A stretch of DNA of 64,000 nucleotides from Macrostomum lignano (GCA_002269645.1 NIVC01001799.1:62001-126000), one strand, 5' to 3'; counted from the stretch's first letter, positions 19,724 to 56,115 are shown. The notes: generated by a model from the sequence alone, not told the origin. Made by a program: numbers and translations.

Positions 19724-20560
19724 GGATCGAAGTGACCTGGGATCGAAGTGACCTGTGATCGAAGTTACCTGGGATCGAAGTGACCTGGGATCGAAGTGAC
19801 CTGGGATTGAAGTGACCTGGGATTGAAGTGACCTGGGATTGAAGTGACCTGGGATCGAAGTGACCTGGGATCGAAGTGACCTGTGATCGAAGTGACCTGG
19901 GATTGAAGTGACCTGTGATCGAAGTGACTTGGGATTGAAGTGACTTGGGATTGAAGTGACCTGGGATTGAAGTGACCTGGGATCGAAGTGACTTGGGATT
20001 GAAGTGACCTGGGATCGAAGTGACCTGGGATCGAAGTGACCTGGGATTGAAGTGACCGGGAATCGAAGTGACCTGGGATTGAAGTGACCTGTGATCGAAG
20101 TGACTTGGGATTGAAGTGACCTGGGATTGAAGTGACCTGGAATCGAAGTGACCTGGGATCGAAGTGACCTGGGATTGAAGTGACCTGTGATCGAAGTGAC
20201 CTGGGATCGAAGTGACCTGTGATCGAAGTGACCTGGGATTGAAGTGACCTGTGATCGAAGTGACTTGGGATTGAAGTGACTTGGGATTGAAGTGACCTGG
20301 GATTGAAGTGACCTGGGATCGAAGTGACTTGGGATTGAAGTGACCTGGGATCGAAGTGACCTGGGATCGAAGTGACCTGGGATCGAAGTGACCTGGGATT
20401 GAAGCGACCTGGAATCGAAGTGACCTGGGATTGAAGTGACCTGTGATCGAAGTGACTTGGGATTGAAGTGACCTGGGATTGAAGTGACCTGGAATCGAAG
20501 TGACCTGGGATCGAAGTGACCTGGGATTGAAGTGACCTGGAATCGAAGTCACATGAGATT
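19724..20560. repeat. 16-bp minisatellite (GGGATCGAAGTGACCT), ~52 copies, degenerate tail to ~20640
   Basis: Tandem copies; the main variant is CG>TG (gatCGaag vs gatTGaag). Confidence 0.95.
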
Positions 20561-22586
20561 AAAGTGACCTAGGGATTGAACTGAAGTGCCTAGGGTTGAA
20601 GTGACCCAAGATTTAAGTGACCTAGGATTTCAAGTCATATATGCCTTAAAATTCCTAAAAGCTAAATTATTTGAAAACATGTGCAACATAGGACCTTTAT
20701 AGTAGTAACCAATGAACATTTCTTCAAAAAAAGTAATTACAATAGGCAAAAAAGTCATGAAAATATATTTTGAAAAAATAAAAGTTGTTTACATGTCTAA
20801 TAAGAATAGTTCATGAATTATTTCAATATTTAAATAAGGAAAAGGCAAACACCACGTCAAAGATAGTTTAAATGATCAAATTGAAATAGATTGTAGCATT
20901 TAGAAACTATTATAAGGCAGGTATTTGCTAGAACAAAATGGTCTTGCAAACTGCTAAGATACATAAGATTGATTATATATTTTGGGGGTCACACAAGACT
21001 GACAACTCTATCTCATATATCTAATAAGATATACATTGCAATGCATTACTAAATATACACAATAATACTCAGTTAAAAAAATAATATTTATTTCATATTA
21101 TGATTGCTGATATTTTAATATTGATATTAATGTTTATTCCAACATTAATTGCAACATAATAAAATTGCAAAAATATGGCTGTTTTTGGTCCAGGCAAAGT
21201 AGATGAATACCATGGCTTTTTGGTCTTAGAATTATATCCTTAAGTCTATAGTTAAAGTCAAAAATATATCCTTGTATAGCTATAGGCCTTTTTTTATCAT
21301 TTTAGATATTAAAAATATTAAGTCTCTAAGTATAGAATTAGAAAAAAGACAAGGCATATTCCTAAATGTTAAATATAGAGTTTAAGATATAGTGCCATAG
21401 GCCTATCTCTAAGTTTGACAATAACTTTACTGTCAATATACTTAGCTTGTTATATAGGCTTTGGCTTAGTATAAAGTACCCATATAAAACTTAATAGCCT
21501 TTTTTCTACTTCTCTCTCTTCTGTACCTATTTTACTATTTGCCATAGGTTTTTAAAGCCCCACTTTTCAGGCTTTGCCTTAAAACTATATTCAATAGTTT
21601 TAATTTTTAGCTTGATTTTTTGTATAATTTAGTCAATACTTTGCTTAAATATTTGCAACAAAACCTTCTTTACCTTGTTGTTGCTGTGTTTTGACTACAA
21701 TTTGTATTTTGCTTTCAGTCCTAGTTGGTAGGGTTGTAGGCCAACATAATTGATTTTTTATACTAGGCCTACCAATGACAGTGTCCTGTTCTTGCTATGA
21801 GCCATTCCATATAACTTAGACAAAAAAGGCAATTTTTTATTTTGTGCTTTCAAATATGTTTTTAATAAAAGTAAACATTTCTAGCTAAAAATAAAAGTAA
21901 ATAAATTAATAAAGTAAATATTACAATTGTGACATTTAAAACAAATTAAATTTTATTGGAATGTTCATTAGTGTAATAGTATACAAATTTTTCTATTCAT
22001 ATTAGAATTTTTGTACTTTTTTTAACTTTGCATCTCTAAGTAAATCATTGTAAATCAAGTAAATTCAAGAAAACAATTAAGCCCATTCAACTTTTTCATT
22101 TTCTATTGTTACACCATTACAATCATTTTGCCTTCAATTATTTGTTTTTTATCACTTGCACTTATAAAATGGTCATTTTCCAGTAAAATTGATACCAATA
22201 AACATCGTTAAAGTATTGATTGATGAGTCACAATGTATAAATGTTACGACTGTTATTATATGGAATGACCCCTATGCATCAAAATTGCATCTAGTATTCT
22301 GCATTAAAACATATTGATAGCAAGATCGAGGTGAAAATAATAAAAGTATGATAAAAATACGAGGGAAATATCTTTTAGAAAAAAAATCGATTTCTTATAT
22401 TTCTTATCACATCACTGTTGAAATATACAGTTATACACATTTTAGATTAATCTGCTTCTTCTATGGTATATGCGTAAAAAAATATGAGGTACACTAGTAT
22501 GTAATCTCAAAACTCTCAGCTCAACTCACAAGTTATAAATTGAAATAAAGGTGAGAAAACATGTTTTTACACTTGAATGTAGTGCG

Positions 22587-22620: not shown

Positions 22621-24379
22621 GGCAATTTTTTACATTTGTTTTCTTTTTTTGCCAAAATTCTTATCTAACTTTCTTTGAAAGAATCGACTTTAAAACCGTG
22701 CGCAATTTTCACTTCGTGAAAGAAGATTATTCGAATCTTTTTCGAAAGCAAAAAGGTTAACGTCTTATGTTTTCATTTAGGGTCAAGAATCAGATAAATT
22801 TGAAAATGATGCGTTTCCGGCTCCTCAAAATGGAGAAACGTACGAAAACTTATGAAAATGTTTAAAATTAAAACTCACCACAGCTATTTTTTGATATTTG
22901 GTACAAATACGAATTGTAGGTCACGTCTATATATTACAAATATATTCTTGTCATTTTTCCTCTCACTGTGGGATAGTGCATAGTCCCAGAAAATTATAGG
23001 CTGTAAAATAAAAAATCTTAACTTGGATCATGTGGTTCTAGATCGTCATCTCTTCTATGAGCTTTACAGAAAAACGGTACATATATACTAGGTTGGGTGA
23101 ACACCCACCCCTCCGCCGGCGGGGGCATTTTATTCTTGCAACCGCGCTGCTGGGCTCTTGGCAGGCAGTGTGTTTTTGCGCAGTTCTTTTTTCTTCTTTT
23201 ATCCTTATTTTAAATGCCTCACAATAAGAAATAATGCAATACAATCGAGGTCTCGCTGCAGCCTAATTGCTTTTGCCAAACGTCGCGTTTTTTTATTGCT
23301 TGAGAGCATTATAGCTTAGATGTACTAGATATTAATACTGTAATACATGCATTCTATTAGCCAATTAGCTCGAGCTCAGTAGTATATAAATTTCCCGAGC
23401 CGATTTCGAATCGGCAATATTTTCAATTTTACTACGGTTACATTTTTTATCCTTCCAAAATGTATTCCAAAATATATCCAGGGTATCCAAAATGTTAAAT
23501 GCAATTGTATTCATGTATCAATCAAGAGCGACGATATCTCATTTCGCGACGTAGGCACGGGTACGCGAATACTTTACTTCATGTACATTTACGACTGTGT
23601 AATGCCTCTTTTTATTCTTTTTTACTCGAAAATCTAACTGTCTATGCCATTTTAAATCTGCGCATTTGAAAGAAAAACTTTTTGTTTAAGTACTCGTATT
23701 TCTCAAAATATTTTTGCAATTTAATTTTTTTTTGAACAAACTGCACTGAAATTTTAGTAAATAGACGCGATTTTGGGCGAGGAGAAGATAACTCGACTAG
23801 TTTCGAGCTTCGAAACAGCCTTCAGCCTTTACTAGCTAGTTGAGAAAATCTATTACGAATTCCGAGTAAATAATTGAGAAGTGATTCCGACAGTATAATT
23901 TTCCGAGAGTGAAGTATCCTGTAAATACTACTGATTAATTAAAAGACGAAGTAGATCTCAAAGCAGACTTATAGAATACCGGAGGCCGTGACCCTGATCT
24001 AATCTCGGGAGCGCCCAGAACTGGAAAGATCATACATGCAGTACATATGCCAGTAGAGACATGTACATGTACATACCGCTCAGGCAATACGCTACCAGAA
24101 CTAAGTAAGAACGCTACCAGTACAGAGAGAAGACGCTACGCAGTAAGAAGAAAGGAATACGCAAATATATATCTCAGCTCAATACTCAGACAGATACTCA
24201 GACAATTACTCATATATATACTAAGAATAATTCACAGACCGATTCTAAGAAAGTATAGAATTAACCCTACGACAACTTAGTGACAGTATACTTACTTACT
24301 TACTACTGACGGGGGGCGCAGGCGCCGCGAATAGGCCGCGAGGCCCCTATCGCAACCCCAAGGTAAAAGAGCACAAGGA

Positions 24380-27300
24380 TTAGCCTTGGGGGTGCGCCCA
24401 GTCCCCGCCAGTAGTCGGCAGGTCCGCAGTGGAGGCATCGGCGACCCTCATCCGGCCGGAGTCCCGGACGAAGGCGCGGAGGTCTCGGATATTGTCCGCG
24501 GTGGTCAGCTCGTCCATCCGCTGGGGGTGGCCGAGGTATTTGTGCCGCGCCTTGTTGAAGTAAGGGCAGAAGGTGACGTGATGCTCCGCGGTCTCCTCTC
24601 CTATGCCACAGAAGGGACAGGTGGGAGGGCAACCGGTTTGCAACGATATATGTCTCTGGAAGAATCCGTGGCCGGTTAGGACCATGCACATCTCCCTGAG
24701 GTCGGTTCTGTTAAGCGAAATCAGATAATCAGAGACTTTCCTGTTCAGGTTAGGCATGGCAGAGCGGCTCTGCCTGTACTCGGTGCAGCTGTTCCAGTGG
24801 AGCTGGTGCTGCTGATGGAGCCACCTGTTGATATGGCGGGTGACTTGCGACCTGGGGGTGGGTAGCCTCATCAGACGGTGGTTGCCGTCTGGGTTGCTGC
24901 CCTCCTTGGCGAGAGAGTCCGCGAGCTCGTTGCCCAGGATGTTGCTGTGACCAGGTGTCCAGATAATTCTAATCCTGTTAAGGACTGAGAGAGATTGCAC
25001 ACTGCGGTGGCATTGAGATACTGTAGCAGCGGAGATATTCTCAGTGGTTAAGGCCTTAATAGCAGCTTGGCTATCAGTGTAGAAATTAATGTCAAAATTA
25101 TTAATGTTCGCCTGAAACAGTTGCTGGGCACACTGCTCAATGGCGCAAATTTCAGCTTGGAAAACTGAGGTGTTCTCACCGAGGTGCAGACTTTCCTGGA
25201 GAAGCATCTTACCCTCGTGGAAAATGGCAATACCCGCTCCAGCGCGGCCGTTGAACAGCGAGCCGTCGGTGAAGCAGTGAATGCCCTGGCTGCGCCGGTT
25301 CACACCGACATCCAGCGGAATGTTGTCTCGGCCAGGGATGGCGGTCTTGAAGCCCCTCCTGATGTTGAGGGCGGGAGGTCGACTATCCACATTGCCCAGG
25401 TCCATGTGGATGTTGTTAAGGTCGCGGCGGACAAAGTCCATATGCGGGATTAATGTTTTCATTGGCATAAAGCCAGAGGGCGCGTTATTTAACGTTTTAT
25501 CTCTGATAAGCCGGGAGGCAGACTTCATAGCCTCCGCCCTAATAAATAGGTGAAGCGGAGGTAGGTTAAGGATAGTGTTCAGCCCCTCGTAAGGGGTGGA
25601 CGGGTACGCACCTGTGATGGCACGGCAAATGCTGCCCTGAAGCTGGTACAGCCGCTGACGGGCGGCCTTCTGCTCCAGCACGCTAGTCCAGATGAGACTC
25701 GCGTATGTGATACTGGGCCGGATGATGCCGGTATAAATCCAACGGACCGTTCTAGGCGAGAGGCCCCAAGTCGGCCCGATGGCTCTGCGCAGCTGGGCAA
25801 AGCAGCGTTTTGCCCGACCGATGACGTTATCAAGGTGCTTCGTCCAGCGCAGGTCATGCGTTAGCGTCACACCGAGGTATTTGACCTCCTTCTTGAAGGG
25901 GATGTTTCTGCCATAGACAGTGAGGTTTTTCATCTCCCACTTACGGCGCTTGGTGAAAACGACAGCGACAGTCTTAGTGACGCTGATTTTTAGGCCATGC
26001 TGTGTAGCCCAGTCGGCCGCCTTGTCGGCGAATTGCTGCATCAGGTTGCGCAGAGTGGCGGGGTCGGGTCCGCTGACGACCGCGGCAACGTCATCGGCGT
26101 AGCCCGCCCTGGTGATACTGCTGGGAATGTCAGCGGTTAGAAGTTCGTCCATGACGAGATTCCAGAGAAGTGGAGTTAGCACGCCACCTTGCGGGCCGCC
26201 TTTCATCACCGCCCGGGTGAGGGTAACGCCCATAAGTGTGGATGTCACAAACCTTTTGCGGATCATAAAATAAATCCAGCGAACAATGCTGTGTCTTACA
26301 TTCCTGCGGGAAAGAGAATTTCTGAAGGAGCGGAAGAGGACATTGTCAAATGCTCCTTCGAAGTCAACGAACAACCCGCAAGCGAGTTGTTTGCTAAGGA
26401 TGGCACTCTCAATTTTGGAGGTAATGGCGTGGAGAGCATGCTCAGTCGTCCTCCCAGGCTGGAAGGCGTACTGGTACTTACTGACAGGGTCGGAGCGCAG
26501 GTCGCACTCTCGAAGCCTCCACAGGATGAGCCTCTCCATCAGCTTAACACAAAAGGAAGTGAGGCTGATGGCCGGAAGGATTTCACGTTGGTGTAGTCAC
26601 CCTTAGCAGGTTTCGGGATGAACACGACTCTGGACATTCTCCAGATTGTGGGAATGTAACCTGTGGTATAACAGTCAACAAGCAATTTAGAGAAAGAATC
26701 AGCAAAGTTTTGCAGCTTTAGCGCCTCCTGCAGGATACAGGGGGCGATATTGTCAGGGCCAGACGATTTATACGGTTTAAAAGAATTTGCTGCCAGCTGG
26801 AGTAGCTGGGGGGTGGCGCACTGCTGGAAAAGCTTGTGATCACAAGGCCTGTGGTCATCGACCACGTACTCCGGTTCGTCAACCTGCGGAAAGCAGGTGG
26901 AGAAAAGAAGATTTAGCGAACCTTCGGCACTGGTAGTGTAGTTACCATCCAGGTGCAGAAGGGAGTTACACTGAGCTAGCGTGTCGTGCCTGAGAGTCCT
27001 GACCAGCCGGGCTGTGGGGTGTTGCCCTTCCAGGCCGGCGCAGTAGGCTTTCCAGGTGGTCTTCTTAGCCCTTCGGATAGCACTTTTGTACATCCTCAGA
27101 GCAGAGTGGTAGTTCTCCCAATCCTCTGGGGTATTCGAGCCGTTTGCGAGGCGTTGCAGTCGGCGGGTGTTTTTCTTCATGCGAGTGAGCTCTTGACTCC
27201 ACCAAGGAGAGTATTTCTTCCTGCAAAACAGCTTAGGGGCGTTAGCGCGTATGGCGGTGTTTAGGATCTCAACGAGGGAGTTGCACCGATGCTCAATGCC

Positions 27301-28196
27301 AGGGAGATCCTCGCTGGAGTCCGGTAAGTTGGCTTCGGTCAGGAGTTTTAGCAGGTCTCTTCGAAAACCTGTCCAGTCGGCCTTTTTCAAATTAAGGCGG
27401 TCCCGGTTCTCATGACGGGCTCCGACGGAGCTGATGCTGTACTGAATGTACGAGTGGTCGGAAAGCGATGGGAGGTCATCCCTAACCAGCCAGCTGTGGA
27501 CCTGATTGAGGGCGTTGTTGGAGACGAGAGTGAGGTCGATAACCTCACGCCGATTAGAGACAATAAATGTGGGTTTGCTGCCTCTGTTGCAAATGTGTAA
27601 CGAGGAGGAGTTAATGAAATCAATTAGTAAGTCACCGCGCCTGTTAGTATCGCTACTAGACCAGGCAGTGTTGTGGGCGTTAGCATCGCAGCTAACGATA
27701 AGCTTCCGATCCTGGAGATTACAGAAGTCCGCCAGCTCCTGCAGGAGGGGGGGAGGGACGTCCTCCTGAATGTCCAGGTAAGCGGAAACGAAGGTCAAGT
27801 CAAAGACTGAGAAAGTACACATGTCTTTAGAGCAAAACATTGGCATAATAGTGGCCGGGAGGTCGTTTTTGACGAGGGCGATAGCTCTGGGGGTGTCGTT
27901 CGCGCAGAGGTACAGAACCTGATAGCCTGGCGGCAGGCAGGTCGGCTTCCCCTTGCGGGTATACGGTTCCTGAATAAGGTAGATGTCAACTTCCTTGTTG
28001 GCAAAGGTGCCTGAAAGGTTGCTAGATGCTGCAAGGGCGTGGTGCAGGTTGATCTGAATAATGTGCAGGTTAACAGGTTGGTTCGCCGGCGGCGGATTAT
28101 TTATTTGGTTGCTGGTGGCAGTGTCATCATTGGGCTGGCCGTTAAGGTTCGCCCTCAGCGCCCCGCTCCTAGTTTGGCACGGGGTTGGGAACGGCA

Positions 28197-28197
<1 letters not shown>
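24380..28197 (-). CDS. LINE ORF2: AP endonuclease - reverse transcriptase - RNase H - CCHC finger; one 1-bp deletion near 26570
   Basis: APE motifs ([31 protein letters not shown]), RT motifs (FRP[I][31 protein letters not shown]), RNase H ([31 protein letters not shown]), [15 protein letters not shown]. Adding one base at 26570-26571 gives 1273 codons. Confidence 0.93.
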
Positions 28198-29257
<1,060 letters not shown>

Positions 29258-30113
29258 TTATCCCAGGATTGCTCCCAGGCGAGGCTCCGGCAGGCCCCCG
29301 GTCCACACTCTGCAAGATCAGGGGGCGGGAGGCCGGCTGCGGGCTTGGGACACAGGCGCCAGGTCGAGTTGACAGCCGACGCCCGAGCCCTCCCCCACAA
29401 GAGCGGCCCTCGAGAACCCGTGTGGTACCAGTTGCAACTAAGGGCTGTCGATGGGTAGTTGGCGCTTAGCCAGCAGCCAACTACTTAGCAGCCACCTGCC
29501 CCGCAAAAAAGCAGCAGGGGGGATCCGTCCCCCACCAGCAGACCAAGACGAGGAAGCTAGCCGCTTCCACGCCAGGCCAGAACGAAAAGGAGGGGGAAGA
29601 GCCTCCTCGAAAAACGAAAAGCTGGCGGATGTCACAGAGTCCCTCGGTTTAAGTTGCCGTTTGCCCCCCTAGTGACAGTATAGTGAGACTATTAATTTAG
29701 AGGGTAGAACTTTCCCCTTAAACAACTTTGGTGGCATCAAAGAGATTAAATTAAAGGCAGCTGCAAAAATTCTAGTATCAGCAGTTAAGGATTATTAAAG
29801 ACAGGGGAAACAGTCCCGTCACACGACCTAGTTGTAAATGTACATGCAGATAGCCAAAGACGTGTTATTATAAGGGTATTGCGGTGTTTCCGGAAATTCT
29901 TTGTCTCTTTTTGTTTCTTTGTCTGCTGATATCGTGGATTCTCAAGCGTCGAAGTGAGAGTTTCAGATCAGGCTAATCGGGTGATGAATTAAGTTCCACT
30001 TACATAGATAGCTTACATGTATATTTTAATAATTTCGGAAATTTCCCTCTCGTCCTTGAGTCTTTCTGGTGCAGTCCACATGCCGTGCTTCATTTGTACA
30101 CTTACGCCAGGGG

Positions 30114-30475
30114 TTTTTTTTAGAGGCAGGGGGGTTGTGTGCACCCTGGCGCACTTTAAGCGACATAGGCACACAACCGGCGAGAGGCATTACTGCCCAT
30201 TCCGCCGACTCCCCTGAGCAGGCATACAAGCGCGCGGATACGTACGCAGGCACACACTCACACAGGAGTTTACAGCGGCCCTAATTTTATTTTATCGTTA
30301 GGCATGTACACTTCACTGCGCCTTGGGGGGTTGGCTCTCAAGGCCGTTAATTGCACGAGCAGAGCCAAGCCGAGATTCCAATTCAGCCCCAAATTAATGT
30401 GACTGCACTTGGAATCGAGCCTGGGTCGCTGGCACACCAGAGCAGCTGCGCTACCGCTGAGCTACGCCCCCCCCC
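30114..30475 (-). mobile_element. tRNA-derived SINE, ~360 bp, with poly(A) tail and 13-14-bp TSD
   Basis: Minus strand: G-run, A box TAGCTCAGCGG (30464-30454), B-box variant GGCTCGATTCC (30421-30411), A8 tail (T run at 30114-30121). CTTACGCCAGGGG at 30101-30113 and 30476-30488. Confidence 0.85.
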
Positions 30476-30985
30476 CTTACGCCAGGGGTGCTCAAATATG
30501 TTTCCAAACAAGTACTCGTAATTGAAGAATTGCTCTAGAGTCACACCTAAAATTCGCGTATGCACGAGAAGCATGATGCATACAAAGGGGGGGTTGTGTG
30601 TTACGATAATATATTTTAATTGCATATGCAATACTGTGTATCGCAAGATGAAGAACCGTGAAAATTAATATGAAATATACTATACAAGCAGAGCACAACA
30701 TTAAGAAAAAATGTCGTCGATTAATGCACACGCTATGGTATACATGTACATGTAACACGTCTGCCGAATATACCTAATGTACACCGTGGTTTTATAGTAT
30801 TATGCGTATTTAGTCGTAGATAAGTAATACATCCAAAATGACTTTGACTATTTCTCGATAGCCAAATTTCTAGAATACAGTAATAATACGCTGTAAACAC
30901 ATTTCATTTGAAATGCAATAACTGCTAGAATGACCGGCTGGAACTTTGCGATTGCAATTACAGCAGCTTTTCCTGCTCTGTGCGC

Positions 30986-33283
30986 TTACTTTGCTGTTGT
31001 CTTGGCGGCGCTACAGCTAGTGGACGTCCAGCCGCCGCAGTAGAGAGGAGTGAAACGGTTCCTGCCGGTGGAAGCTGTCAAATCGACTGGCGACGACGTC
31101 TTCTGCCAGCACGGCATCTGGGCTTTCCGTCGGCCGTTGTAGTCGTCGCTGAACTGTTTTTTCTTGTGCATTCGACGTTCTGAATTTGTGGAATGCTGTG
31201 GCCGATGCTGGCACTGTTCTTTGCCTGGCCGTACGATGCTAGAATTGCACTGCATTTCGACAGCTTGCTGCTGCAGTAGGGAATTCGGATGGTTTAATTC
31301 GATAATCTTCTCGGGTTCTTGCAAACTTTGCCGCGCAATTTCACCATTGTTGGTATTTTGCAGAGTCACCTGAAGTAGCTGACTTTGCTGAGTCTGATGC
31401 ATATTCTGCTCAAGAAATGGACTCCATTGAGTTGGATATTCGTTCTGTTGAAGCATCGGACTCTGTTGAGTTGGATATTCGTTCTGTTGAAGCACTGGAC
31501 TCCGTTGAGTTGGATATTCGTTCTGTTGAACCATCGGACTCTGTTGAGTTGGATATCCATTCTGTTGAAGCACTGGACTCCGTTGAGTTGGATATTCGTT
31601 CTGTTGAACCATCGGACTCTGTTGAGTTGGATATCCATTCTGTTGAAGCACTGGACTCCGTTGAGTTGGATATTCGTTCTGTTGAACCATCGGACTCTGT
31701 TGAGTTGGATATCCGTTCTGTTGAAGAACCAGATTCTGCTGAGTTGGGTGTCCGTTCTGTTGAAACATAGGACTTTTCTGCTTCTGTTGAACAGTTTGTT
31801 GAAGAATTTGACTTTGTTTAGGGTGTTGCAGGTTTTGCTGAAGCACACATGTATGACTCTGTTCGGGTTGCAAGCTTTCCTGATAGACCTGACTCTTCTC
31901 GGGCTGTTGCTGAATTTGGTTATTCAAGTGACCTTGATAGAGCCTTTGTAGATTGGCCTGATGTGTTTGAACTTGCAGAAGTGGCTGAAGATTGCTGTTC
32001 TGAAGTGTGAGATTTGGCTGAAGCAGTTCATTTTGCTGGGGTTGAGCATACACAGATTTCTGAATCATTCGACCCTGCTGTTGCTGCTGCAGATTCTCCT
32101 GAAGCAGTTGGATTTGCCTTTGTTGTTGCAAATACTTCTGAAGCAGCTCAATCTGCTGCCTTTGCTCCAGATTCCTTTGATGAAGCTGGCTCTGTTGGAG
32201 TCGTTGCAGGTTCTTCTGAAGCAACTTGATTTCCTTTTTTTGCTGCAGATTATTTTGATGCAACTGGCTCTGCTGCAATTGTTTCAAATGCTTTTCAAGC
32301 TGACTCTGTTGCTTTTGCTGCAGATTCCTCTGTTGTAACTGGCTCTGCTGAAGCTGTTGCATATTTTTCTGAAGCAGCTGGATCTGCTTTTGATGCTGCA
32401 AAATCTTCAGGTGCAACTTGCTCTCTTGTTCGTACTGCAAATTCAAGTTATTTTTAACAAACTGGATCTCCTTTTGTTGCCGACTTTTCTTCCTTGATTG
32501 GTTTTGTTGAAGTTGTTGCAAAACTTTCTGATTTAGCTCCAGCCGCTGCAGTTTTTCCAGATACTTCTTCCGTTTATCTCTAATAAGCAACGCTTCATTT
32601 CGATTTTGCTCCGTTGGAACTGATGAATTTGTTGGCTCCGATGAGCGCCGCGGGATAACGTAGGTCGCGCTGTCCAGAACTCGACGGCTGACGCAGAAAT
32701 CGTTGTCGCTTGCCTCGCACGAACTCGAATCTTCGTTGTCGCTAATTCCCCATACGTTGCTTTGGTTTAGTTCATCAATATTATCATTAAATATGCCTTC
32801 AAAGCCCCAATCAAACAGCTGCCCATCGGTGTCGGCCTTGAGCTTGCGCTCAATCTTACTGATGGTGCTCATTCGGAAACTTTCACCACCACCGCCGCCT
32901 TCGCCGCCTTCGCCACCTTCGCCACCTCCACCATCAATGTTAGTCATTTTGATACTTTCGCCACTGCGGCCGCCATCAACGCCACCGCCGTCGCCTCCAT
33001 CGATGTCATTGACAAGGGGAGTATCTTCGCCACTCTCAACAGGTTCTTCCTCGCCACCATCGTCACCACCATAGACCTCGATGTAGCCATCGCCACCCGG
33101 GTCGGCTTCGTGAACTGCTCCGATGCCCCGATCGCAGATGATTTTCCACAGCTCTCTGCGGTATTGCAGCTTGCATTCGTTGATTTGGGATCGCAATGGC
33201 TCCAGGTCGATGCCAAGGTCTATGACTGAACCGAGCACGGCCGGTGTGGGCGCGCAGAAAGTCGTGTCGTTTTCGTCAGGCAT
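30986..33283 (-). CDS. Gln-rich low-complexity protein A (unknown family; paralog of 34592-35926); ORF open from 33313
   Basis: Uninterrupted 2.3-kb ORF. Met 33283 has the same spacing to the conserved FCxP motif as the paralog's Met. Gly/acidic linker, Gln-rich coiled segment, 13-aa repeats. Confidence 0.75.
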   Translation of the reverse strand: MPDENDTTFCAPTPAVLGSVIDLGIDLEPLRSQINECKLQYRRELWKIICDRGIGAVHEADPGGDGYIEVYGGDDGGEEEPVESGEDTPLVNDIDGGDGGGVDGGRSGESIKMTNIDGGGGEGGEGGEGGGGGESFRMSTISKIERKLKADTDGQLFDWGFEGIFNDNIDELNQSNVWGISDNEDSSSCEASDNDFCVSRRVLDSATYVIPRRSSEPTNSSVPTEQNRNEALLIRDKRKKYLEKLQRLELNQKVLQQLQQNQSRKKSRQQKEIQFVKNNLNLQYEQESKLHLKILQHQKQIQLLQKNMQQLQQSQLQQRNLQQKQQSQLEKHLKQLQQSQLHQNNLQQKKEIKLLQKNLQRLQQSQLHQRNLEQRQQIELLQKYLQQQRQIQLLQENLQQQQQGRMIQKSVYAQPQQNELLQPNLTLQNSNLQPLLQVQTHQANLQRLYQGHLNNQIQQQPEKSQVYQESLQPEQSHTCVLQQNLQHPKQSQILQQTVQQKQKSPMFQQNGHPTQQNLVLQQNGYPTQQSPMVQQNEYPTQRSPVLQQNGYPTQQSPMVQQNEYPTQRSPVLQQNGYPTQQSPMVQQNEYPTQRSPVLQQNEYPTQQSPMLQQNEYPTQWSPFLEQNMHQTQQSQLLQVTLQNTNNGEIARQSLQEPEKIIELNHPNSLLQQQAVEMQCNSSIVRPGKEQCQHRPQHSTNSERRMHKKKQFSDDYNGRRKAQMPCWQKTSSPVDLTASTGRNRFTPLYCGGWTSTSCSAAKTTAK

Positions 33284-33539
33284 CCTTAGACTTCTCTGCG
33301 TAAATCGGTTCATTTTGAGTCCTTGTTCAATTAAAAATCATGGATGCTCCTTAATATCAAAAGATTTTAAATAAAACCTCTTGAAGGATTTTGCATTCGA
33401 TGTGCATTTTAAACTGCCATAGACAGCCAAACTATGGGGACATTAGTAGTAATATCTTGGGTTAAAAATAGCTAATACTCAAGTCGAAGCAGGATACAGT
33501 GGCTCGGTGGAAACGAGCTTTGAACGGGGAATCATGTGC

Positions 33540-34110
33540 CGCTAATTATACTGTAGGGTCCACCTATAAGGGCCGGGCAAGCAGCGGTATGCTCTCGGGC
33601 TTGCAAACGTCGGGGAGAACCGGGTTTGGCCCGAGGTGAGTGAGCCTGAAGACTGGGCAGGGGCAGATAAAGTGCTCATGGTTTTCACTGCCGGCGCGAC
33701 AAAAAGGGGCACCGCTCCTCAGGTACCTGGTCCTAAAGGAAACGGTGGCAAGCAAAGCAGCCATGTCCGGAGAGGGCCACGCGCCATGCTGACTGCTCTA
33801 AGATCCCTGCGGGTTGAGCCAAAGGCGAGCTCTACGCAGGAGGGGGAGGGACAGGGGACGGCAGCGAGGGATTGTCTGCAATTGGGATTTGATCACCGAG
33901 ATGGGGATGGGGCCTCTGGGCCCGGCCTGAGAAGCGCGCTGGCGGAGCTGGCCTTGGCCAGCAGGTCCGGGATCTATTTGAGCTGCACCTCATTGCCCAG
34001 CGCGAGCCCATTGAGCTGGGCGTTATAATCCAGGACAGATTTGGAGCTGGTAGTACTATGGCAGAGAGCCCGAAGGGCTGCTTGGCTGTCGGACTGAAAA
34101 ATAGTATGGG
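33540..34110 (-). mobile_element. Decayed 5'-truncated LINE fragment (RNase H end and CCHC finger)
   Basis: Minus strand reads SDSQAALRAL...NEVQLK*IP[gap]DLLAKA, then VALSGHGCFACHRFL*DQVPEERCPF/CRAGSENHEHFICPCP, with stops and frameshifts; same domain order as the ORF2 C-terminus at 24380-25300. Confidence 0.8.
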
Positions 34111-34591
34111 ACCATATGTACACGCGAGTGCTTTTTAAAGTTTCAGATGCGAATGCAAAGTAAAATCCGTCAATTGTAAAAAATGACGAATACGAGCGTA
34201 CAATACAACCTTTGGCCCAGTTCTACTCTTCTCAATGAATCATATTGTTCTTGCTCATTCTAATAATTCGTTAATGGTATAAACGTAAACAAGTGGACTG
34301 CATTGACAATTATTCATGCCTTGTACTTGAGTATAGGCTGCAGAATACGGGTCAACCTTTCTCATTCGATTGGTACCGAGGAAGGTTATTACACTTCTAT
34401 TGTACAGGCATTTAATTAGACAGCATACGGAGGGGCTTTAAAAATAAAAAATTATTAACATACGTTTAGTTGCGTAGGAGGATATTTAAAACCGACACAA
34501 ACTCGAATTGTTGCGTTGTTCAAAAAAGTAGCCATGAAATATTTGTATGTAGTTAGCCTGGACAGTGTTGAGTAGCTTACTGACGAGTTCG

Positions 34592-35926
34592 TTACCGTTC
34601 CGTACCGGAGTTCTTGTGCCGCTTCTTCTTGGCTATGCACGTGGCAGATTTGTTCCAGTCGCCGCACTTCATTGGAACAAAAGAGTGACTACCTATGTGG
34701 CGCCGCGCCGGTGCACTTCCTGCTTCGCTCTTCAGTGATTCGTCGGCAGCTGTTGTGCTGTGCGGAGAGGAGCAGCTGCTGCTGCTGCTGCTGGATGTGC
34801 TGGACAAGTTGTAGTCATGCAGGTGAGACATTCGCCGGCTCAGGTACGCCAGCCGTGGATTGACTGGATGCGACTGCTGCGTACCTGCTTCGAACGGGTT
34901 TTCTGCATAATACCGCTGCATTGGATAGGCGGACCTGGGCTCTAGATACGACTTCTGCTGAGATAGGAAATCTTGCTGTTGTTGTTGAAGAAGAAAATTA
35001 CTTTGGATATTGACCGGTGGATAGTATTGCCGTTGAATGTGAGGTTTCTGCTTCTCTGCATAAGACTGCGGCTCAAATTGCTGATGCAACTGTTGTGGCT
35101 TGTGTCGCGATTTAGCCGGTCGTGGATGCTTGGAATGGGGCAGACGGTGCAGAGGAGGCTGCACCTGAGCTTCAGGATACAGCAGCTGTTGCGCTTGCAT
35201 TGCGTTTGGAGGACCTGGCGGGGGGATTTTTTGCGGAATAAACTGCTGCTGCTGACCTGCAGCCTGGGGTTGGTAACCGGACTGCTGTTGCGACCGTTGG
35301 TTTGGCCCCTGGTTCCGCAAAATCGTTGCACCTTGTTGCATCATCATCTGCGCCTGTTGAGTCAGAAGCGTCTCAGCCAGAGTTGCTGAGTTTGGTGACG
35401 AAGTCTGCGAATAGGCCAGGACTGGGCTGCTGCACTGTTGGACTCCTTGGCTTTTGCGATTGCGCCATCTGGCGTTGCTGCCGCCTTTGCAAACTGCACC
35501 AGAGTTCGATGCTGAAGTACCAAATCTTCTGCTTCTGGCGTTGCTCTGGTTTTCATCGTCGCCTTCCTCAGCTGGCTGCTCCTCGCCAATGCCACCGCCG
35601 CCGCCAATACCACCACCGCCGCTGCCGCCGCCGTTGCCACCGCCACTGCTGCCGCCACCGCCACTGCTGCCGCCACCGCCACGGACGCCGCCGCCGAGGC
35701 CACCGCCACTGCTGCCGCCGCCGCCGCCATCGCCTCCACCACCGCCGCCACTATCGCTACCCTGAATACCCTGATCGCAGATGATGTTCCACAATTCCTT
35801 GTGGTAGCGCAGCTTGCAAGCTTGAATCCGATCGCGAGCTGGGGCCAGGTCGACGCCAAGGTCGATTATGCTGCCGAACAAACCGAAGGCAGGGGTGCAG
35901 AAGACCGTGTACTTTTTACCGGACAT
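34592..35926 (-). CDS. Gly/Gln-rich low-complexity protein B, 444 aa (unknown family; paralog of 30986-33283)
   Basis: Uninterrupted ATG-TAA ORF; N-terminal 49 aa are ~57% identical to protein A by manual alignment; shared C-terminal FxPxxCGxW motif. Confidence 0.78.
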   Translation of the reverse strand: MSGKKYTVFCTPAFGLFGSIIDLGVDLAPARDRIQACKLRYHKELWNIICDQGIQGSDSGGGGGGDGGGGGSSGGGLGGGVRGGGGSSGGGGSSGGGNGGGSGGGGIGGGGGIGEEQPAEEGDDENQSNARSRRFGTSASNSGAVCKGGSNARWRNRKSQGVQQCSSPVLAYSQTSSPNSATLAETLLTQQAQMMMQQGATILRNQGPNQRSQQQSGYQPQAAGQQQQFIPQKIPPPGPPNAMQAQQLLYPEAQVQPPLHRLPHSKHPRPAKSRHKPQQLHQQFEPQSYAEKQKPHIQRQYYPPVNIQSNFLLQQQQQDFLSQQKSYLEPRSAYPMQRYYAENPFEAGTQQSHPVNPRLAYLSRRMSHLHDYNLSSTSSSSSSSCSSPHSTTAADESLKSEAGSAPARRHIGSHSFVPMKCGDWNKSATCIAKKKRHKNSGTER

Positions 35927-37653
35927 TTTTTACTTATTAATTCCTCTTATGCATGCATGAGAGCTTAAGCCAAGTTATGGCTTTTTGCTTGGGCATGAAG
36001 AAATTGTTCATTTGCCAACGATAGAGAGAATTCTAAAGCAACTGATCTCGTACCATAGAGATGAAAAGGACAAGGAGGTATATGCTCATGTTTGCATAAT
36101 AATTCTATATTGTATTGCATTCATGTACAAGCAAGCCGGTTACGAAGCTTTGTATGTCTTCTCGGTTTATTGATTTATTTATCAATATCAAAATGACATT
36201 TACTAGGTAGCCAGCTTCACAAAAGTTTTGAGGCGAGAGGGCGAAAGCAATGGTGATAAAAGCCTGGCAGAGCCAATCAGCTCCGAGCAAACAGGCTTGA
36301 GCCAGAGCTACTAGCAAGAACAACACGTACAAATACTAGGCTAAGATATGAGACGCAGTATAAAGCACAACAAGCATGTGGTAGAAATTGAAAAAGTGCA
36401 GAACACCGTCCGTTAGGCGCAGGACGCAAAGCTCTAGAGAACGCATAGCGCTGAATGGGGTTTTGCCATAGACAAATTCTGTCGATAAAAATCCGCGCTA
36501 GATAAATCCCATTTCTCGAAAGCATGCTCAATGCACCAGCGATATGATAAATACATGTATATACATGTACATGTGTAACCGACCTTCCCAGCTCATTTCT
36601 AGAAAAATCAACTGCAAGTGTATAGCGTTTTAATTCAAGGTGACCATGGATTTTAGCTTCAGAAGTCCAGATTTGTACACCATACATTTGCATGTCTGTA
36701 GCTGTCGTAAATCTTCCCCAAGCACTCCAAACCGTTACGCCCCGATCGACCTCGCTCTACACTATAATTAAATCCCTTTTGCTAAAAAAATGTGGACCAC
36801 AAATGCCTGCAAGTAGTTTTTGACCTATTCAAAATCCGAGAAGAGACAGAAGCATAAGCGCATATATCCTGAAGTAGTTGCGGCCGGGCGACACGATCAA
36901 GGCTGACTTAAAGTGTCTTTAATAAGTTGTAATGCTGGGCAGAGGATGTAAATGTAGTAAACACGAATTAAAATAATGGACTGACCTCCGGTTAGGCTAC
37001 GTCAATCAGGCGCTCTAGGAGTGTCATCAATTGCAAATTGGAAAAGTGCATAAGAAACAAATATGCAGGATTAGCAACAGAATTAAAGTGCATGTTCATT
37101 AGTAGTGACTTGCATGTTACAATTCTACACACTCGATACGAACGTGATCTTTTTCGGATACTCTGCAGTCAGTTTAAAACTGGACTATGAACACAAGCGT
37201 TAAAAACTTTGAGACTTAATTTAAATCAAATGAATCAAATTACGCAATTGTGGTTAAAGGCTTGGTGGTTAAAGTGCAAGATACGTGTTTATTCCAAAAA
37301 ATAAATTAACGGTTTTTGTAACATAGAAACAAAACTGATATTACTTGTGTAGTTTTTGAGGTAAAGCTTAAATTTGATTCAAACAAGAAGAAATTTTTTA
37401 AAAATACATTTTTAGCCTTGGAATTAAAAACTAATATTAACTAGAGAATTGTACATTTTTGTTTGCTGACACATCACACGATTTTGCTTATGTTCTCTCC
37501 TCAGCATTTGTTTCTCTTGTATATTGACCTCATTACAAGTTGCCTTTCTGTGCATCTGGAGGTTTGATAAGAAGAGTAGTCAGATATCAGTTTCAGTATC
37601 AAATCTGTACGTTCTCTCTCTAATTATCCTAAATTCTGACCAAGAAGTCAGAA

Positions 37654-40600
37654 ATGCTATCCAAATTTGAGTCGAAATCTGCACGAGTGAAGGGTAAGTA
37701 CAATTGCGGAATTTTAAACAATTTATTTTACAATGTATTTTTAATTAAAACTTTTGCATATTCAATAGATTTTTTTCTGATTGTGCCTATTAGTCAAATT
37801 TTTAGACAGAAGTGCTATAACCTAATATGTATCTTGTAGGCCTAATAATTTTGTTCCAGACAAAATGACTAACTTAGTGGAAAAATGGCTCTCTACAATT
37901 ATTACTAGACAGAAAGGTGGCAAACAAAGCAATAGAAGAATCATTGTCAATTGCTAAGGTGGCCATGGCCTTCCTCTCAGCTATGACCTAGCTATGTAAT
38001 ATTTATAATGGCAGTGCTTATCCCCATGGTACCGTAGTAATAATTTCTGTCTTATTCCAACGGTACCGTGCGAATAATTTTCTGCTTATCCGCACGGCAC
38101 ACTGACGAGATAGCTGCCCTATCTTCTACATATGCCGTGTGGGAAGTTTAGTACATACGATTTGAGTGCAGTATAACAACATAACTTGGCTTGAACATTT
38201 GTTCTAAAGAAATAAAGATTTAACGACTTTTCTATGAGAAAGAATTTTTTTGTGTAGTAACAAATAATTTAAATTGCGTGCCGTGTGGATAAGCAGAAAA
38301 CTATTCGCACGGTACCGTTGGAATAAGACAGAAATTATTCCTACGGTACCGTGGGGATAAGCACTGCCATTTATAATTAATTGGATTGTTGGATTGAATT
38401 GTATATAGCTTTTCTCAAAAACATTTAGTATCTAACCCTAAGTGTTTTTATCTATTGAAAATGACTAACATAATTGATTCTTTTGTTTATCACTATATTG
38501 TAGCCAATGTTGATATATATATACTTATGTTAGGTCATTAAAATTTAAAATTAATAAAAATGAATAGATTTAACCTTTGAAATAAATAAAGAAACTAGAC
38601 TTTTTTGCTATTTTCATGATATAGACCAATGTATAATAGCTTTATTCTTTTATATCCTAAATGTGCAATTTTGTTTTAATGTATATAATATTAAAAATAT
38701 TGTAAATATTTTGAATATTATGATTGTGACAACTCTTTTGTTTTAAACAGCACCAAGAAAAACCTATAAATACAAGTATATAAGTTGCCAACAGGGAAAA
38801 CTAAACCTGTGTGCTTCTTTTTAGGCTTCTACAATGAAAATAAATTGAGCAATATTTCTGTCTTAGTCATTTAAGGATACCAAAGACCCTAAGCATTGAA
38901 AGAACTCATTCAATTCTTAGAACAAGATTAGAACTAGACTTCTAGATTTAGAATCTAAAAAATCACTTCAGGGTAGAACATCTACTAAATGGTTAGGAAT
39001 ATTTAGACCTAGGATCTAAGAACTTACCTCAAAGCAAAATATCTACCAAAGTGTAAGTTGTGACCCTTTGATCCTAGTAATGCCTGGACTAAGAAAAGCC
39101 CCTAAAAGAGAGAATTAATACAGATAGAAGTTTAGTGTTATAGATTGCTCAGGCCAAGAGTACATATATATTACCTGCTTAAGATGATATATAAGCAGTA
39201 CTACTAGCACAAAGTACAATGTTAAAAATACATCAAAATGTCACATTAGAAATGGAAACTTTCTACAACTTGGTTGTAGCAATAAGATTAGTTTCAAAAG
39301 ATAGAATAATACCCTTTCCACAAATATGTAATTTTTTTCTATTGTATCTAATATAATTTTTATAGCCTATTTTGTTTTTGATTAAGAAAAAAGCAAATCT
39401 AAAAAAACTAAAAATTTAAGCAAGTTTTTAATATTTGAAATTTAATATGCTAATTAAAAATTGAAATAGAAGTTTACTATAATAGCACTGCATTTTTAAT
39501 GACCTTTGTTCAAATTATGAACTTCATTCAATTTTGAGTTATATTTATAACAAGTATTTTTCATTGTAAAAAAGTCTTTCTGTTTTGCATATTTGCTTTT
39601 TAGTCTATAGAAAAGTCATTTATTTGCAAAATTATACCAATTTTATATGTAAAAATGAAGGCAGTCTTTATTATTTTAACAAATATAAGATAAGAATGCT
39701 TGCCTAAAGTAGTAAGAAATATTGAGATGATTTTAAAAAACTTTAAAATATTATTTATAGCTACAGCTCTAATTTCAGCCAATGAAAAAACTCTTTTTTA
39801 TACAGTAGGCTAAGCTTTTGATATTTATTGTATTACTACAGTGTTATTTTTCAATGTTAATTTGATAAATGTATCAAATTATAGACTAGTGTGTTTAATC
39901 ATTTAATTGCATTTTGTGTATTAAAAAGTGGTTAGACATATGTTTTTAATTAACTTTTGTCTTTTACCATATTTATGGTTTAAATACCATCTACCACTAT
40001 TTGGCCAGTATTTATTAATATATTGCACATAAATTTTGGCTAATATTAGCCTGTCCAGAAAGCTTATAAAGCAAATTTTTCCTAAGCCCAAGCCACTCAC
40101 ATTAACTCATGGATGCAGGCCTCTCCTTCCATCCCAAGCGGCCATGGATCCTGTGCTCTCTGCACAATGGCGTTATCCAGCTCTGGGACTATCGAATGCG
40201 CACTCTTATTGAGAAGTTCGATGAACACGAGGGCCCAGTTCGAGGCATCCATTTCCATGGCAACCAGCCATTGTTTGTGTCCGGCGGAGACGATTACAAA
40301 ATCAAGGTGTGGAATTACAAGCAGCGCAAGTGCCTGTTCACCCTGCTAGGCCATCTGGACTACATCCGAACTACATTCTTCCATCACGAGTATCCGTGGA
40401 TTCTGTCCGCTAGCGATGACCAGACAATCAGAGTGTGGAATTGGCAGGCTCGCACTGCTATCTGCGTGCTAACTGGCCACAGTCACTACGTTATGTGCGC
40501 CCAGTTCCACCCGAGCGAAGATCTGGTTGTCAGCGCTAGCCTAGATCAGACCATTCGAGTCTGGGATATTAGCGGCCTGCGCAAGAAGAACGTGGCTCCG

Positions 40601-43600
40601 GGACTTGGCGGTCACGACGATATCGGAGGTTACAGAGGCGGCGGCATGCAGGTTAGTTGAGCTTATAGTTGTTGAGGCCAATTTTGCCTGAAAAATGATT
40701 AAACAGCACTGTTTATTGTGAACCATTTGCCCAGGGTCCCGGTCATACCGACTTGTTCGGCACCACCGATGCCATTGTGAAGCACGTGCTAGAAGGCCAC
40801 GATCGCGGCGTCAACTGGGTGATGTTCCACCCAACTATGCCCGTCATTGTTAGCGCCGCCGACGACCGTCAAGTGAAACTGTGGCGAATGAATGACAGCA
40901 AAGCCTGGGAGTTGGACACCTGCCGAGGCCACTATAACAACGTGTCCTGCGCCATCTTCCATCCCCGTCAAGAGCTCATGCTCAGTAATAGCGAGGACAA
41001 GAGCATTCGAGTGTGGGACATGGCCAAGCGGACCTGCGTGCAAACGTTTCGTAGGGACAATGACCGATTCTGGATTCTAACAGCGCATCCGTCATTGAAC
41101 CTGTTCGCTGCTGGGCACGACAATGGCATGGTCATCTTCAAGCTGGAGCGGGAGCGGCCCGCCTACTCGGTTAGTGCTGCTGCAGATCCTATTCCGGTAG
41201 CTGAGATCCCATTCACGTAGCTGAGATCCCATTCCGGTAGCTGAGATCCCATTCCGGTAGCTGAGATCCCATTCCGGTAGCTGAGATCCCATTCCGGTAG
41301 CTGAGATCCCATTCTGGGTAGCTGAGATCCTATTCCGGTAGCTGAGATCCCATTCCGGTAGCTGAGATCCTATTCCGGTAGCTGAGATCCTATTCCGGTA
41401 GCTGAGATCCCATTCTGGGTAGCTGAGATCCCGTTCCGGTAGCTGAGATCCCATTCTAGGTAGCTGAGGTCCGGATCCCATATCCCTCACTCCCGATCCC
41501 CAGTGAGCAGGCAGCAAAAGCAGAAATCCCAAACACCGTCTCCTATTCAGATCCACGAGAACTGCCTGCTATACGTGAAGCAGAAGACGCTTCGCCGGCT
41601 AGACCTGAACACGAACAAAGACCAGCCGGTGCTGCAGCTGCCAAAGAAGGCCAACTACACCAGTCTGACTTACAACCCAGCCGAGAATGCCGTACTGCTG
41701 GGCTGCCGCAGCGCTAATCCGGACAATTCCACCTACGAGCTGCACTGCTTGCCAAGAGACGCCACCGATTCGGCTGTCGATGCCGCCGACTCGAAGCGAT
41801 CTTCGGGCCTGACCGCAATCTGGGTGGCCCGCAACCGGTTCGCCGTGCTTGACAAAGGCCACACGCTGGCCGTTAAGAATATGCGCAACGAGGTGTCTAA
41901 GAAGTTTCAGCTGGCCAACGCTGAGGAGATTTTCTACGCCGGTACTGGCTGCCTGCTGGTGAAGGAGCCCGACACCGTGTCGCTGTACGATGTGCAGCAG
42001 AAACGTGCTCTCAGCTCTGTGAAAGCTGCTCAGGTAAGATTAAATATTTGTTGGTTGTTTCCCGGATTTCAACATTTCATTAATACTCATCTAGGTTTCG
42101 ATTGGGTACAGTACGTATCTGAAAACAAATATCCCAATATCCTGAACGGCTCCAGATCTCACTGTCCTGAGCAGCTCCTGATCCCTAATATCCCTAATCC
42201 CTGATCCCTAATATCCCTAATCCCTGATCCCTAATATCCCTAATCTCTGATCCCTAATATCCTTAATCCCTGATCCCTAATATCCCTAATCCCTGATCCC
42301 TAATATCCCTAATCCCTGATCCCTAATATCCCCAATCCCTGATCCCTAATATCCTGAGAGTTCCTGATCCCTAATAATATCCCTAATCCCTGATCCCTAA
42401 TATCCCTAATCCCTGATCCCTAATATCCTGAGAGTTCCTGATCCCTAATAATATCCCTGATCCCTAATATCCTGAAAGTTCCTGATCCCTAATAATATCC
42501 CTAATCCCTGATCCCTAATATCCCTAATCCCTGATCCCTAATATCCTGGAGAGTTCCTGATCCCTAATATCCTGAGCAGTTTCTGATTTCTAATATCCTG
42601 GAGAGTTCCTGATCCCTAATATCCTGGAGAGTTCCTGATCCCTAATATCCTGGAGAGTTCCTGATCCCTAATATCCTGAGCAGTTCCTGATCCCTAATAA
42701 TATCCCTAATCCCTGATCCCTAATATCCCTAATCCCTGATCCCTAATATCCTGGAGAGTTCCTGATCCCTAATATCCTGAGCAGTTCCTGATCCCTAATA
42801 TCCTGGAGAGTTCCTGATCCCTAATATCCTGGAGAGTTCCTGATCCCTAATATCCTGAGCAGTTCCTGATCCCTAATAATATCCCTAATCCCTGATCCCT
42901 AATATCCCTAATCCCTGATCCCTAATATCCTGGAGAGTTCCTGATCCCTAATATCCTGAGCAGTTCCTGATCCCTAATATCCTGGAGAGTTCCTGATCCC
43001 TAATATCCTGGAGAGTTCCTGATCCCTAATATCCTGGAGAGTTCCTGATCCCTAATATCCTGAGCAGTTCCTGATCCCTAATATCCTGAGCAGTTCCTGA
43101 TCCCTAATATCCTGAGCAGTTCCTGGTCCCTAATAATTCAAAATTACCTCTCGTCCTCTCCGTCCGCAACAAAACAGGTGCGCCAGGCGATCTGGTCTGC
43201 CGACATGTCCAATGTGGCCCTAATCTCAAAGCTGACCGTGACCCTGTGCGATAGGAAACTGGCCACCCTGTGCACAGTGCAGGAGAGCGTCCGGATTAAG
43301 AGCGCCGCCTGGGACGACTCCGGCGTGCTGCTGTACACCACAGCCAATCATATTAAGTACCTGCTGACCTCCGGCGATAATGGCATTATTAGAACCCTGG
43401 ACGTGCCAATCTACCTTACTCGGGTTAAAGGTGAGCTTTTAAACTGGCAAAAGCGTTTCAATACATATCGGTGTCATCTTTACCATGTAGATTTTTTCAA
43501 TACATATCGATAGTAAATTATTGAATTATCATATTATCAATACATATCAGTTATATTTATTATTTAGCGTTTTTCGATACATATCGGTGCCATATTTACC

Positions 43601-56059: not shown

Positions 56060-56115
<56 letters not shown>

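Follow-up and report, generated by a model that had tools for sequence, protein, structure and literature searches.

A Macrostomum lignano protein family with two short conserved end-motifs around low-complexity cores

Oskar, Bucky ball/Velo1 and C. elegans MEG-3 are taxonomically restricted, mostly disordered and rapidly evolving proteins with a short conserved N-terminal element. The high-molecular-weight (HMW) glutenins, the spidroins and the involucrin/SPRR proteins of the epidermal-differentiation complex of vertebrates carry conserved ends with Cys or Gln around a variable repeat core and are encoded in tandem clusters, and Notch co-activators of the Mastermind/MAML type can be unrecognisable by sequence, as C. 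elegans LAG-3 (SEL-8) shows. Many genes of the flatworm Macrostomum lignano, in which stem cells, regeneration and sexual selection can be studied with transgenesis and RNA interference (RNAi), have no recognisable homologues outside flatworms, and orphan families of disordered proteins are common in its genome. Here we describe one M. lignano family through two neighbouring open reading frames, ORF A and ORF B, which occupy positions 30986 to 35926 of a 64,000-nucleotide stretch (GCA_002269645.1, NIVC01001799.1:62001-126000; hereafter the window), and compare it with these systems.

The gene pair and its family

ORF A and ORF B are well supported as genuine single-coding-exon genes and as tandem paralogues. 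As had been predicted from the sequence, they lie head to tail on the minus strand, each uninterrupted, with a gap of 1278 bp between them. In window coordinates the pair and its elements are:

30986..33313, minus strand: ORF A, uninterrupted, 775 amino acids (aa) with the first ATG as start, 765 aa with Met11 as start
30986..31066, minus strand: C-motif of ORF A, GRNRFTPLYCGGWTSTSCSAAKTTAK, and stop
31403..31774, minus strand: 39/78-nt in-frame repeat of ORF A, ten 13-aa units QQN[GE]YPTQ[QR]SP[VM][LV]
32069..32563, minus strand: Q/L-rich stretch of ORF A, residues ~251-415
33122..33265, minus strand: N-motif of ORF A, residues 17-64, TTFCAPTPAVLGSVIDLGIDL and the helix EPLRSQINECKLQYRRELWKIICDRGI; 105-bit profile match
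33314..34591, minus strand: intergenic spacer between ORF A and ORF B
34592..35926, minus strand: ORF B, uninterrupted, 444 aa, with a core that is Gly-rich and then Q/P/S-rich
34592..34696, minus strand: C-motif and basic tail of ORF B, GSHSFVPMKCGDWNKSATCIAKKKRHKNSGTER, and stop; KKKR cluster at residue 433
35765..35908, minus strand: N-motif of ORF B, residues 7-54; 103-bit profile match

In the alignment, Met11 of ORF A stands opposite Met1 of ORF B. The exact product of ORF A is already recorded as a called gene of 775 aa on contig NIVC01001799.1 (GCA_002269645.1), and the recorded call for ORF B is 432 aa over the same 1335-nt range, so that 36 nt are removed somewhere within it. In the DNA itself both coding regions are continuous, and for these the earlier description of the pair as intronless is correct; introns may be present in the 5' UTRs. 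The window belongs to the Mlig_3_7 assembly, and locus L001 is identical to its reverse complement. The gene models of Mlig_3_7 come from an RNA-seq transcriptome assembled with the genome as guide (PMC5730564), and their presence at the window copy and at the paralogues leads us to infer that ORF A, ORF B and their paralogues are transcribed.

An exhaustive HMMER search of 1.84 billion representative proteins, using a profile of the two N-termini, returned eight matches, of which six are true relatives and two (P0003, P0008) are false positives among repeat proteins. Five of the six relatives are from M. lignano and the sixth, P0007, is a Logan transcript, in agreement with the suggestion that the pair belongs to a lineage-specific family. 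The relatives, together with a further copy beside one of them, are:

P0001 (cluster-mate P0009): homeolog or allele of ORF A
P0002 (with P0010 and P0011): 328-350 aa, the B-like group
P0004 and P0005 (with P0012 and P0013): 348-406 aa, one group
P0006: 427 aa
P0007: 450 aa, on the ~1.6-kb contigs L003 and L004 of runs SRR30276804 and SRR30276812
L005 12026-13383, plus strand: tandem duplicate of P0002, on the same strand as P0002 (L005:10001-11038), with a GGKAGG-repeat core

P0007, the sole member not traced to the M. lignano assembly, shares 40% identity with P0006 across 212 residues, and its contigs are mRNA-like. The GC content at third codon positions is 0.79 in P0007, close to the 0.76 of P0006. 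P0002 and P0006 are single-exon genes and P0005 has introns. By identity within the N-terminal module, ORF A, ORF B and P0002 cluster together, while P0005 and the P0006/P0007 pair stand apart. Apart from one UniRef label on P0005 (considered below), the M. lignano relatives are labelled hypothetical or uncharacterised; the proteins were already deposited, and the family and its motifs appear to be undescribed. Literature searches yielded nothing relevant on them. The pattern CK[LR][RQ][YF]x[RKQ]E[VL]W found no relatives in the JGI metagenomes, and a homologue search with full-length P0006 and P0007 returned only the queries. A homologue search with short N-domain alignments returned nothing, not even members with identical N-termini in the same collection, and is therefore uninformative. 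There is good support for a small family that evolves fast and has so far been found only in Macrostomum.

The copy adjoining P0002 has no in-frame ATG, a frameshift near 12844 and no gene call; it is probably a decaying tandem duplicate or pseudogene, unless assembly errors account for its state. The tandem pairs, the turnover of repeats (described below) and this decayed duplicate imply that duplication, repeat turnover and loss have been recurrent in the family, which is to say birth-and-death evolution, for which the decayed neighbour of P0002 provides the support.

Conserved ends and variable cores

Over residues 11-64 of ORF A and 1-54 of ORF B, 29 of 54 positions are identical (BLASTP, E 4e-19), and the spacing from Met to motif is the same in both, as had been observed. 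The original count of 28 identities was right but its length of 49 positions was not, the strings quoted being 48 residues long. The motif [VI]D[LMF]G[ILV]D[LV]..[LAV][RQ]..I..CK[LR][RQ][YF]..E[LVI]W.[IV][IL]C is present in all seven member types, and alignment of six subfamilies revealed nine invariant positions in the module, among them I, C-K, E, W and C in its helix; only two Cys are invariant. By inspection and alignment, SGWKK or SSWKK follows the helix in P0002, P0006 and P0007. Within the window, tblastn found no copies of the N- or C-motif beyond those of ORF A and ORF B.

The module is not a signal peptide, since it is internal in P0005 (residues ~30-60) and in P0006 and P0007 (residues ~88-122). 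ORF B opens with 20 residues of moderate hydrophobicity (MSGKK-YTVFCTPAFGLFGSII; Kyte-Doolittle maximum 1.54 in a 19-residue window), and P0002 has a similar, borderline start after KK. The earlier judgement by inspection that no signal peptide is present thus holds for ORF A, P0005, P0006 and P0007, but for ORF B and P0002 it has to be softened to a borderline hydrophobic start.

We modelled the proteins with AlphaFold2 on alignments six or seven sequences deep, which is shallow and makes the models weak evidence. From the six-sequence alignment, the N-module was modelled as a single helix spanning fragment residues 28-59 (EPLRSQ to RGIGAVHE) with a predicted local distance difference test score (pLDDT) of ~83, and with low confidence everywhere outside it. 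Foldseek found no match to this model in the PDB, as is expected for a lone helix. Helical-wheel reasoning places I34, C37, K38, Y41, E44, L45, I48 and I49 on one broad face, with W46 and C50 alongside, and such a face would be suited to packing into a helix bundle or onto a partner. In the I-D-L-G-I-D-L stretch before the helix, hydrophobic residues alternate with acidic ones or Gly, much as in an edge strand. The module may therefore be a strand-plus-helix docking element, with an amphipathic helix of ~30 residues, and not a globular domain. The folded, Cys-containing N-domain that had been proposed is not what these models suggest.

Database comparisons gave the module no other identity. 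With hmmscan, Pfam produced nothing credible for full-length ORF A and ORF B at E <= 1, for the eight relatives, or for isolated N-modules to E <= 10, so that the original failure to recognise either end-motif is matched by the absence of any Pfam domain or transposable-element protein among the matches. The UniRef label on P0005 (UniRef100_A0A1I8HN22, 'Zf-CpG_bind_C domain-containing') could not be reproduced with current Pfam at E <= 10. Searching all PDB sequences with a six-subfamily N-profile gave nothing significant; the string ECKRR[YF]..[LV]WK, common to a Ser/Thr phosphatase helix (8pq7_A, E 2.3), was judged to be a chance likeness.

At the other end, the last ~27 residues of ORF A and ORF B share 11 of 27 positions, a weak BLASTP match (E 0.004), and outside the two termini the proteins do not align. 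The pattern F[VT]P[LM]x4W nevertheless recurs within ~45 residues of the stop in six of the seven member types (A, B, P0002, the L005 duplicate, P0006 and P0007), although profile and pattern checks found it absent from the P0005 subfamily. It arose in 6 of 200,000 shuffles of ORF B, and this rarity, taken with its recurrence at the C-terminus of six members, argues that the motif is not a product of chance. A basic cluster (KKKRHK, KRRHGKQERHRRL or RRRPPQPPGRQRRPSKRRI) usually comes after the motif, and most members also have an acidic patch followed by N[QK]SN, as judged by inspection and alignment. Most members carry a Cys in both end-motifs, but in the C-motif the L005 duplicate has Val in its place, and in P0007 its position is shifted. 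In ORF B the C-motif is predicted to be unstructured (pLDDT ~38). With a motif predicted to be unstructured, a variable Cys and a subfamily that does without, the 'C-terminal clasp' of the original prediction finds no support.

Between the ends, the middles of both ORFs are low-complexity sequence, and the description of them as unalignable Gly-, Gln- and Ser-rich stretches was correct. ORF A is 19% Q overall, and its core also has a Gly/Glu/Asp stretch. Its Q/L-rich stretch comprises 165 helix-prone residues (Q 35%, L 20%) with a 26-aa periodicity, and 78-nt and 153-nt tandem repeats lie within it at 32122-32442. Tandem Repeats Finder resolved the 13-aa array (31403-31774) as 9.1 copies of period 39 or 4.8 copies of period 78 with 92% matches. 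The core of ORF B begins with a 70%-Gly tract and continues with Q/P-rich and Ser-rich segments. In the AlphaFold2 model of full-length ORF B, made from a seven-sequence family alignment, 333 of 444 residues (about 75%) have pLDDT < 50, the only ordered elements being the N-helix (28-55, pLDDT ~75) and two Q-rich helices (180-204 and 308-325). This accords with the disordered core that had been proposed, and the family's proteins are predicted to be largely intrinsically disordered. The core can vary freely, as repeats expand and contract and as its composition drifts, being Gly-, Q-, Q/L-, P- or S-rich.

The COPA <- B -> A order of the window (COPA, the gene neighbouring ORF B, is described below) recurs at a homeologous locus, L002 (NIVC01000150.1), which allows substitutions and indels to be compared:

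L002:10001-12442: homeolog of ORF A, an 813-aa ORF
L002:7397-8701: homeolog of ORF B, a 434-aa ORF

All four coding indels between the homeologs (18, 12, 117 and 3 nt) are multiples of three, whereas eight of ten in the flanking non-coding sequence are not, and the spacer between ORF A and ORF B, at 1.33% substitutions, has out-of-frame indels of 22 and 1. The coding sequence of ORF B differs by 0.5% substitutions as against 1.3-1.5% for intergenic sequence. Most amino-acid differences between the ORF A homeologs fall in the 13-aa array, where L002 (~11537-12025) has 39 more residues, or three more units. The annotated L002 product (PAA89508) is only 735 aa, with 234 nt of the array skipped, which is probably an artefact of transcript assembly. 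Outside the array, ORF A shows three non-synonymous and seven synonymous differences (omega ~0.11, binomial P 0.001); there are no substitutions in its N-motif or its last 55 residues, and four synonymous and no non-synonymous ones in the Q/L-rich stretch. The C-motif and tail of ORF B differ by two synonymous changes only, leaving the protein identical. The in-frame indels, the low ratio of non-synonymous to synonymous change and the end-motifs, identical in protein sequence between homeologs, point to purifying selection, albeit from small numbers. That the ends would be under constraint had been anticipated, and they are likewise conserved across paralogues that are otherwise unalignable.

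Genomic surroundings

Downstream of ORF A, and on the same strand, lies an apparently intact non-LTR retrotransposon, a long interspersed nuclear element (LINE). Beyond ORF B is the coatomer alpha gene, transcribed divergently from it. Their coordinates in the window are:

24290-29670, minus strand: LINE, 1.3 kb downstream of ORF A
28223-29119, minus strand: LINE ORF1
26539-28197, minus strand: LINE endonuclease
24380-26539, minus strand: LINE reverse transcriptase and RNase H; the ORF2 parts overlap by 1 nt
~40109-47000, plus strand: COPA (coatomer alpha) gene, divergent from ORF B

The LINE is missing from L002, where its flanks abut with an overlap of ~12 bp, likely the target-site duplication. 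Since both genes are present there without it, the LINE is a later, recent insertion unrelated to ORF A and ORF B. On the same grounds we rejected the idea that the ORFs are themselves LINE-encoded, the reverse transcriptase, RNase H and endonuclease moreover being found in separate ORFs.

The COPA segments identified cover the WD40, second beta-propeller, TPR and C-terminal exons; between them lie minisatellites (41179-41472, 42165-43135 and 43456-43823) that are presumably intronic. The window as a whole is saturated with minisatellites of 8-57-bp units (for example at 10-1063, 9192-10006, 11092-12033, 19724-20584, 54688-56067, 59568-61360, 61671-62637 and 62808-64000), which explain most of its long 'ORFs' and its strong local swings in GC and AT skew. 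At 1546-8237, a minisatellite with a 42-bp unit (159 copies, 97% identity) creates ORFs of ~1700 aa on both strands (3114-8328) with spurious Pfam matches to DUF7446 and Amj; its reverse-complement unit forms a short array at 18873-19146. Rfam had no match in window positions 29000-40000, the spacer included. A tRNA-like stretch (GGGGCGTAGCTCAGCGGTAGCGCAG...GGCTCGATTCC) downstream of ORF A (~30395-30475, minus strand), for which ARAGORN found no tRNA and Rfam no match, is possibly a fragment of a short interspersed nuclear element (SINE).

Possible roles and comparison with described systems

We tentatively favour, with slightly less than even confidence, the reading that these are disordered nuclear adaptor or co-regulator proteins. 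The N-terminal strand-plus-helix would dock onto a conserved cellular partner or self-associate, the basic C-terminal tail would act as a nuclear localisation signal (NLS) and the C-motif beside it as a second docking site, while the variable Q-rich, acidic and Gly-rich core could, like an activation domain, make contacts that are weak and multivalent; what the core recruits would differ from one paralogue to another. Hints of a nuclear location are the basic clusters at or near the C-terminus, the acidic and Q-rich tracts found in the family and the internal N-module of P0005-P0007. Several points weigh against this reading. The C-terminal tail of ORF A is not basic, its KKK and RRK clusters lying ~50 residues upstream, and NLS-like clusters are weak evidence in any case. 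The apparent disorder may partly reflect models made from six or seven sequences. The homeologs differ by only 1-4%, so that substitutions are few, and gene conversion could mimic conservation. Gene IDs of family members other than the window copies did not occur in the supplementary material searched from M. lignano papers. Finally, the Tyr/Pro/Gln array and the terminal Cys would fit a structural, cross-linked role as well.

Such a role, which the original prediction had preferred, would make the proteins a structural, polymer or condensate scaffold whose ends assemble end to end through disulfides, Gln/Lys cross-linking or helix bundling and whose Q/G/Y/P-rich core forms the material or condensate, possibly as organisers of germ granules or chromatoid bodies or in an intracellular cross-linked structure. 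We consider it unlikely, though deserving of serious attention. Conserved termini around an unalignable low-complexity core are what it would lead one to expect, and the composition is compatible with condensate or polymer formation; ORF A has both its ten Tyr/Pro/Gln-rich 13-mers, whose number varies between homeologs, and its 165-residue periodic Q/L region, most members have Cys at both ends, the genes are tandem and single-coding-exon like other fast-evolving structural gene clusters, and the extreme N-termini of ORF B and P0002 are moderately hydrophobic after KK. On the other hand, a lone helix and an unstructured C-motif, as far as models from a shallow alignment go, leave the proteins without folded terminal domains, the C-motif Cys varies and one subfamily lacks the motif, and a true repeat array is found only in ORF A. 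P0006/P0007, the most conserved lineage, carry acidic, basic and Pro-rich tracts typical of regulators, and an N-module ~88 residues into the protein excludes a signal peptide there. There is a much slimmer chance that the family is a functional analogue of Mastermind/MAML or LAG-3/SEL-8, in which a transcription-factor complex on DNA would take up the N-helix in a groove, leaving the Q-rich tail to recruit the transcription machinery. The predicted architecture matches (a long N-helix, a Gly-rich, acidic and Q-rich disordered tail, basic clusters), and the helix start LaplR--IneCKr resembles MAML1 MERLRRRIELCRR over 13 columns (pairwise E 0.006). However, hhalign assigned the resemblance a probability of 6%, Pfam MamL-1 did not match, MAML1 was not among the PDB profile matches, the C-motif has no Mastermind counterpart, and a co-activator serving a single pathway would not need as many as six or more paralogue groups. 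Least probable of all, and largely refuted, is that the ORFs are non-functional, whether chance products of repeat DNA, parts of the adjacent LINE or decaying pseudogenes. It is true that minisatellites in the window make very long spurious ORFs, that a LINE lies close by on the same strand and that the L005 copy is clearly decayed, but only ~630 nt of ORF A are repetitive and its conserved ends not at all, the homeologous locus keeps both genes without the LINE, coding indels stay in frame with low dN/dS (non-synonymous to synonymous rates), the motifs persist across paralogues that otherwise cannot be aligned, and gene models derived from RNA-seq exist. The remaining probability we leave to something other than these four readings.

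In a more ambitious and improbable reading, the DLGIDL-helix and FVPMx4W together would constitute an undescribed bipartite docking module. The family, specific to Macrostomum, would then organise either a transcription complex or a compartment without a membrane, such as nuclear bodies or the chromatoid bodies of neoblasts or germline. If this were true, the family would be a flatworm counterpart of Oskar, Bucky ball, MEG-3 or Mastermind/SEL-8, and tandem duplication and repeat turnover would tune stem-cell or germline biology in a regeneration model. Should a partner of the N-helix or the C-motif be found, the family would offer a tractable case of how disordered adaptors originate and diversify after a recent whole-genome duplication. 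It is a cleanly delimited orphan family: two short motifs are constrained, the disordered core evolves freely, and birth and death of genes can be seen in progress. For the present it is an uncharacterised family of hypothetical proteins of an ordinary kind and not a surprising system.

Two families with defined N-terminal elements were compared directly. The Cip/Kip proteins (Pfam CDI, PF02234) share with this family a conserved N-module of ~50 residues with LFG...W, disorder in the middle, and a short motif and an NLS at the C-terminus, but the likeness is superficial. LFG is found only in ORF B and P0002, and there without the Arg, RxL and WNFDF are absent, and the invariant Trp is followed by [NKG][IV][IL]C and not by NFDF. 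Homology was rejected: hhalign against a p27/p21/p57 KID alignment gave a probability of 0.24% over 6 columns, and Pfam CDI matched neither the full proteins at E <= 1 nor the N-modules at E <= 10. Mastermind/MAML and LAG-3 (SEL-8) come closer in layout, having a lone N-terminal helix as the only ordered element before a long Gln-, Gly- and acid-rich disordered tail; this family is likely nuclear as they are, and there is the short local resemblance R..I..C[KR]R. Homology to Mastermind (Pfam MamL-1, PF09596) was not supported, the hhalign comparison having been made over 13 columns of the MAML1 13-74 helix (a string verified against PDB 2F8X chain M), and neither MamL-1 in Pfam nor MAML1 among the PDB profile matches appearing at E <= 10. 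The family also differs in its additional C-motif, its DLGIDL stretch before the helix and its many paralogues.

The remaining parallels are of organisation. Like the genes for the HMW glutenins, spidroins and involucrin/SPRR, the M. lignano pair are tandem single-coding-exon genes with varying repeat number, and the QQNGYPTQQSP units of ORF A resemble the Q/P/Y repeats of glutenins in composition; in contrast to those proteins, the ends are not folded domains in the AlphaFold2 models, most members lack a signal peptide or true repeats, and there is no homology. With Oskar, Bucky ball/Velo1 and MEG-3 there is no sequence relationship, and the family has no RNA-binding or LOTUS-type domain, but it is, as they are, lineage-restricted, mostly disordered as far as can be predicted, marked by one short conserved element at the N-terminus, and fast-evolving.

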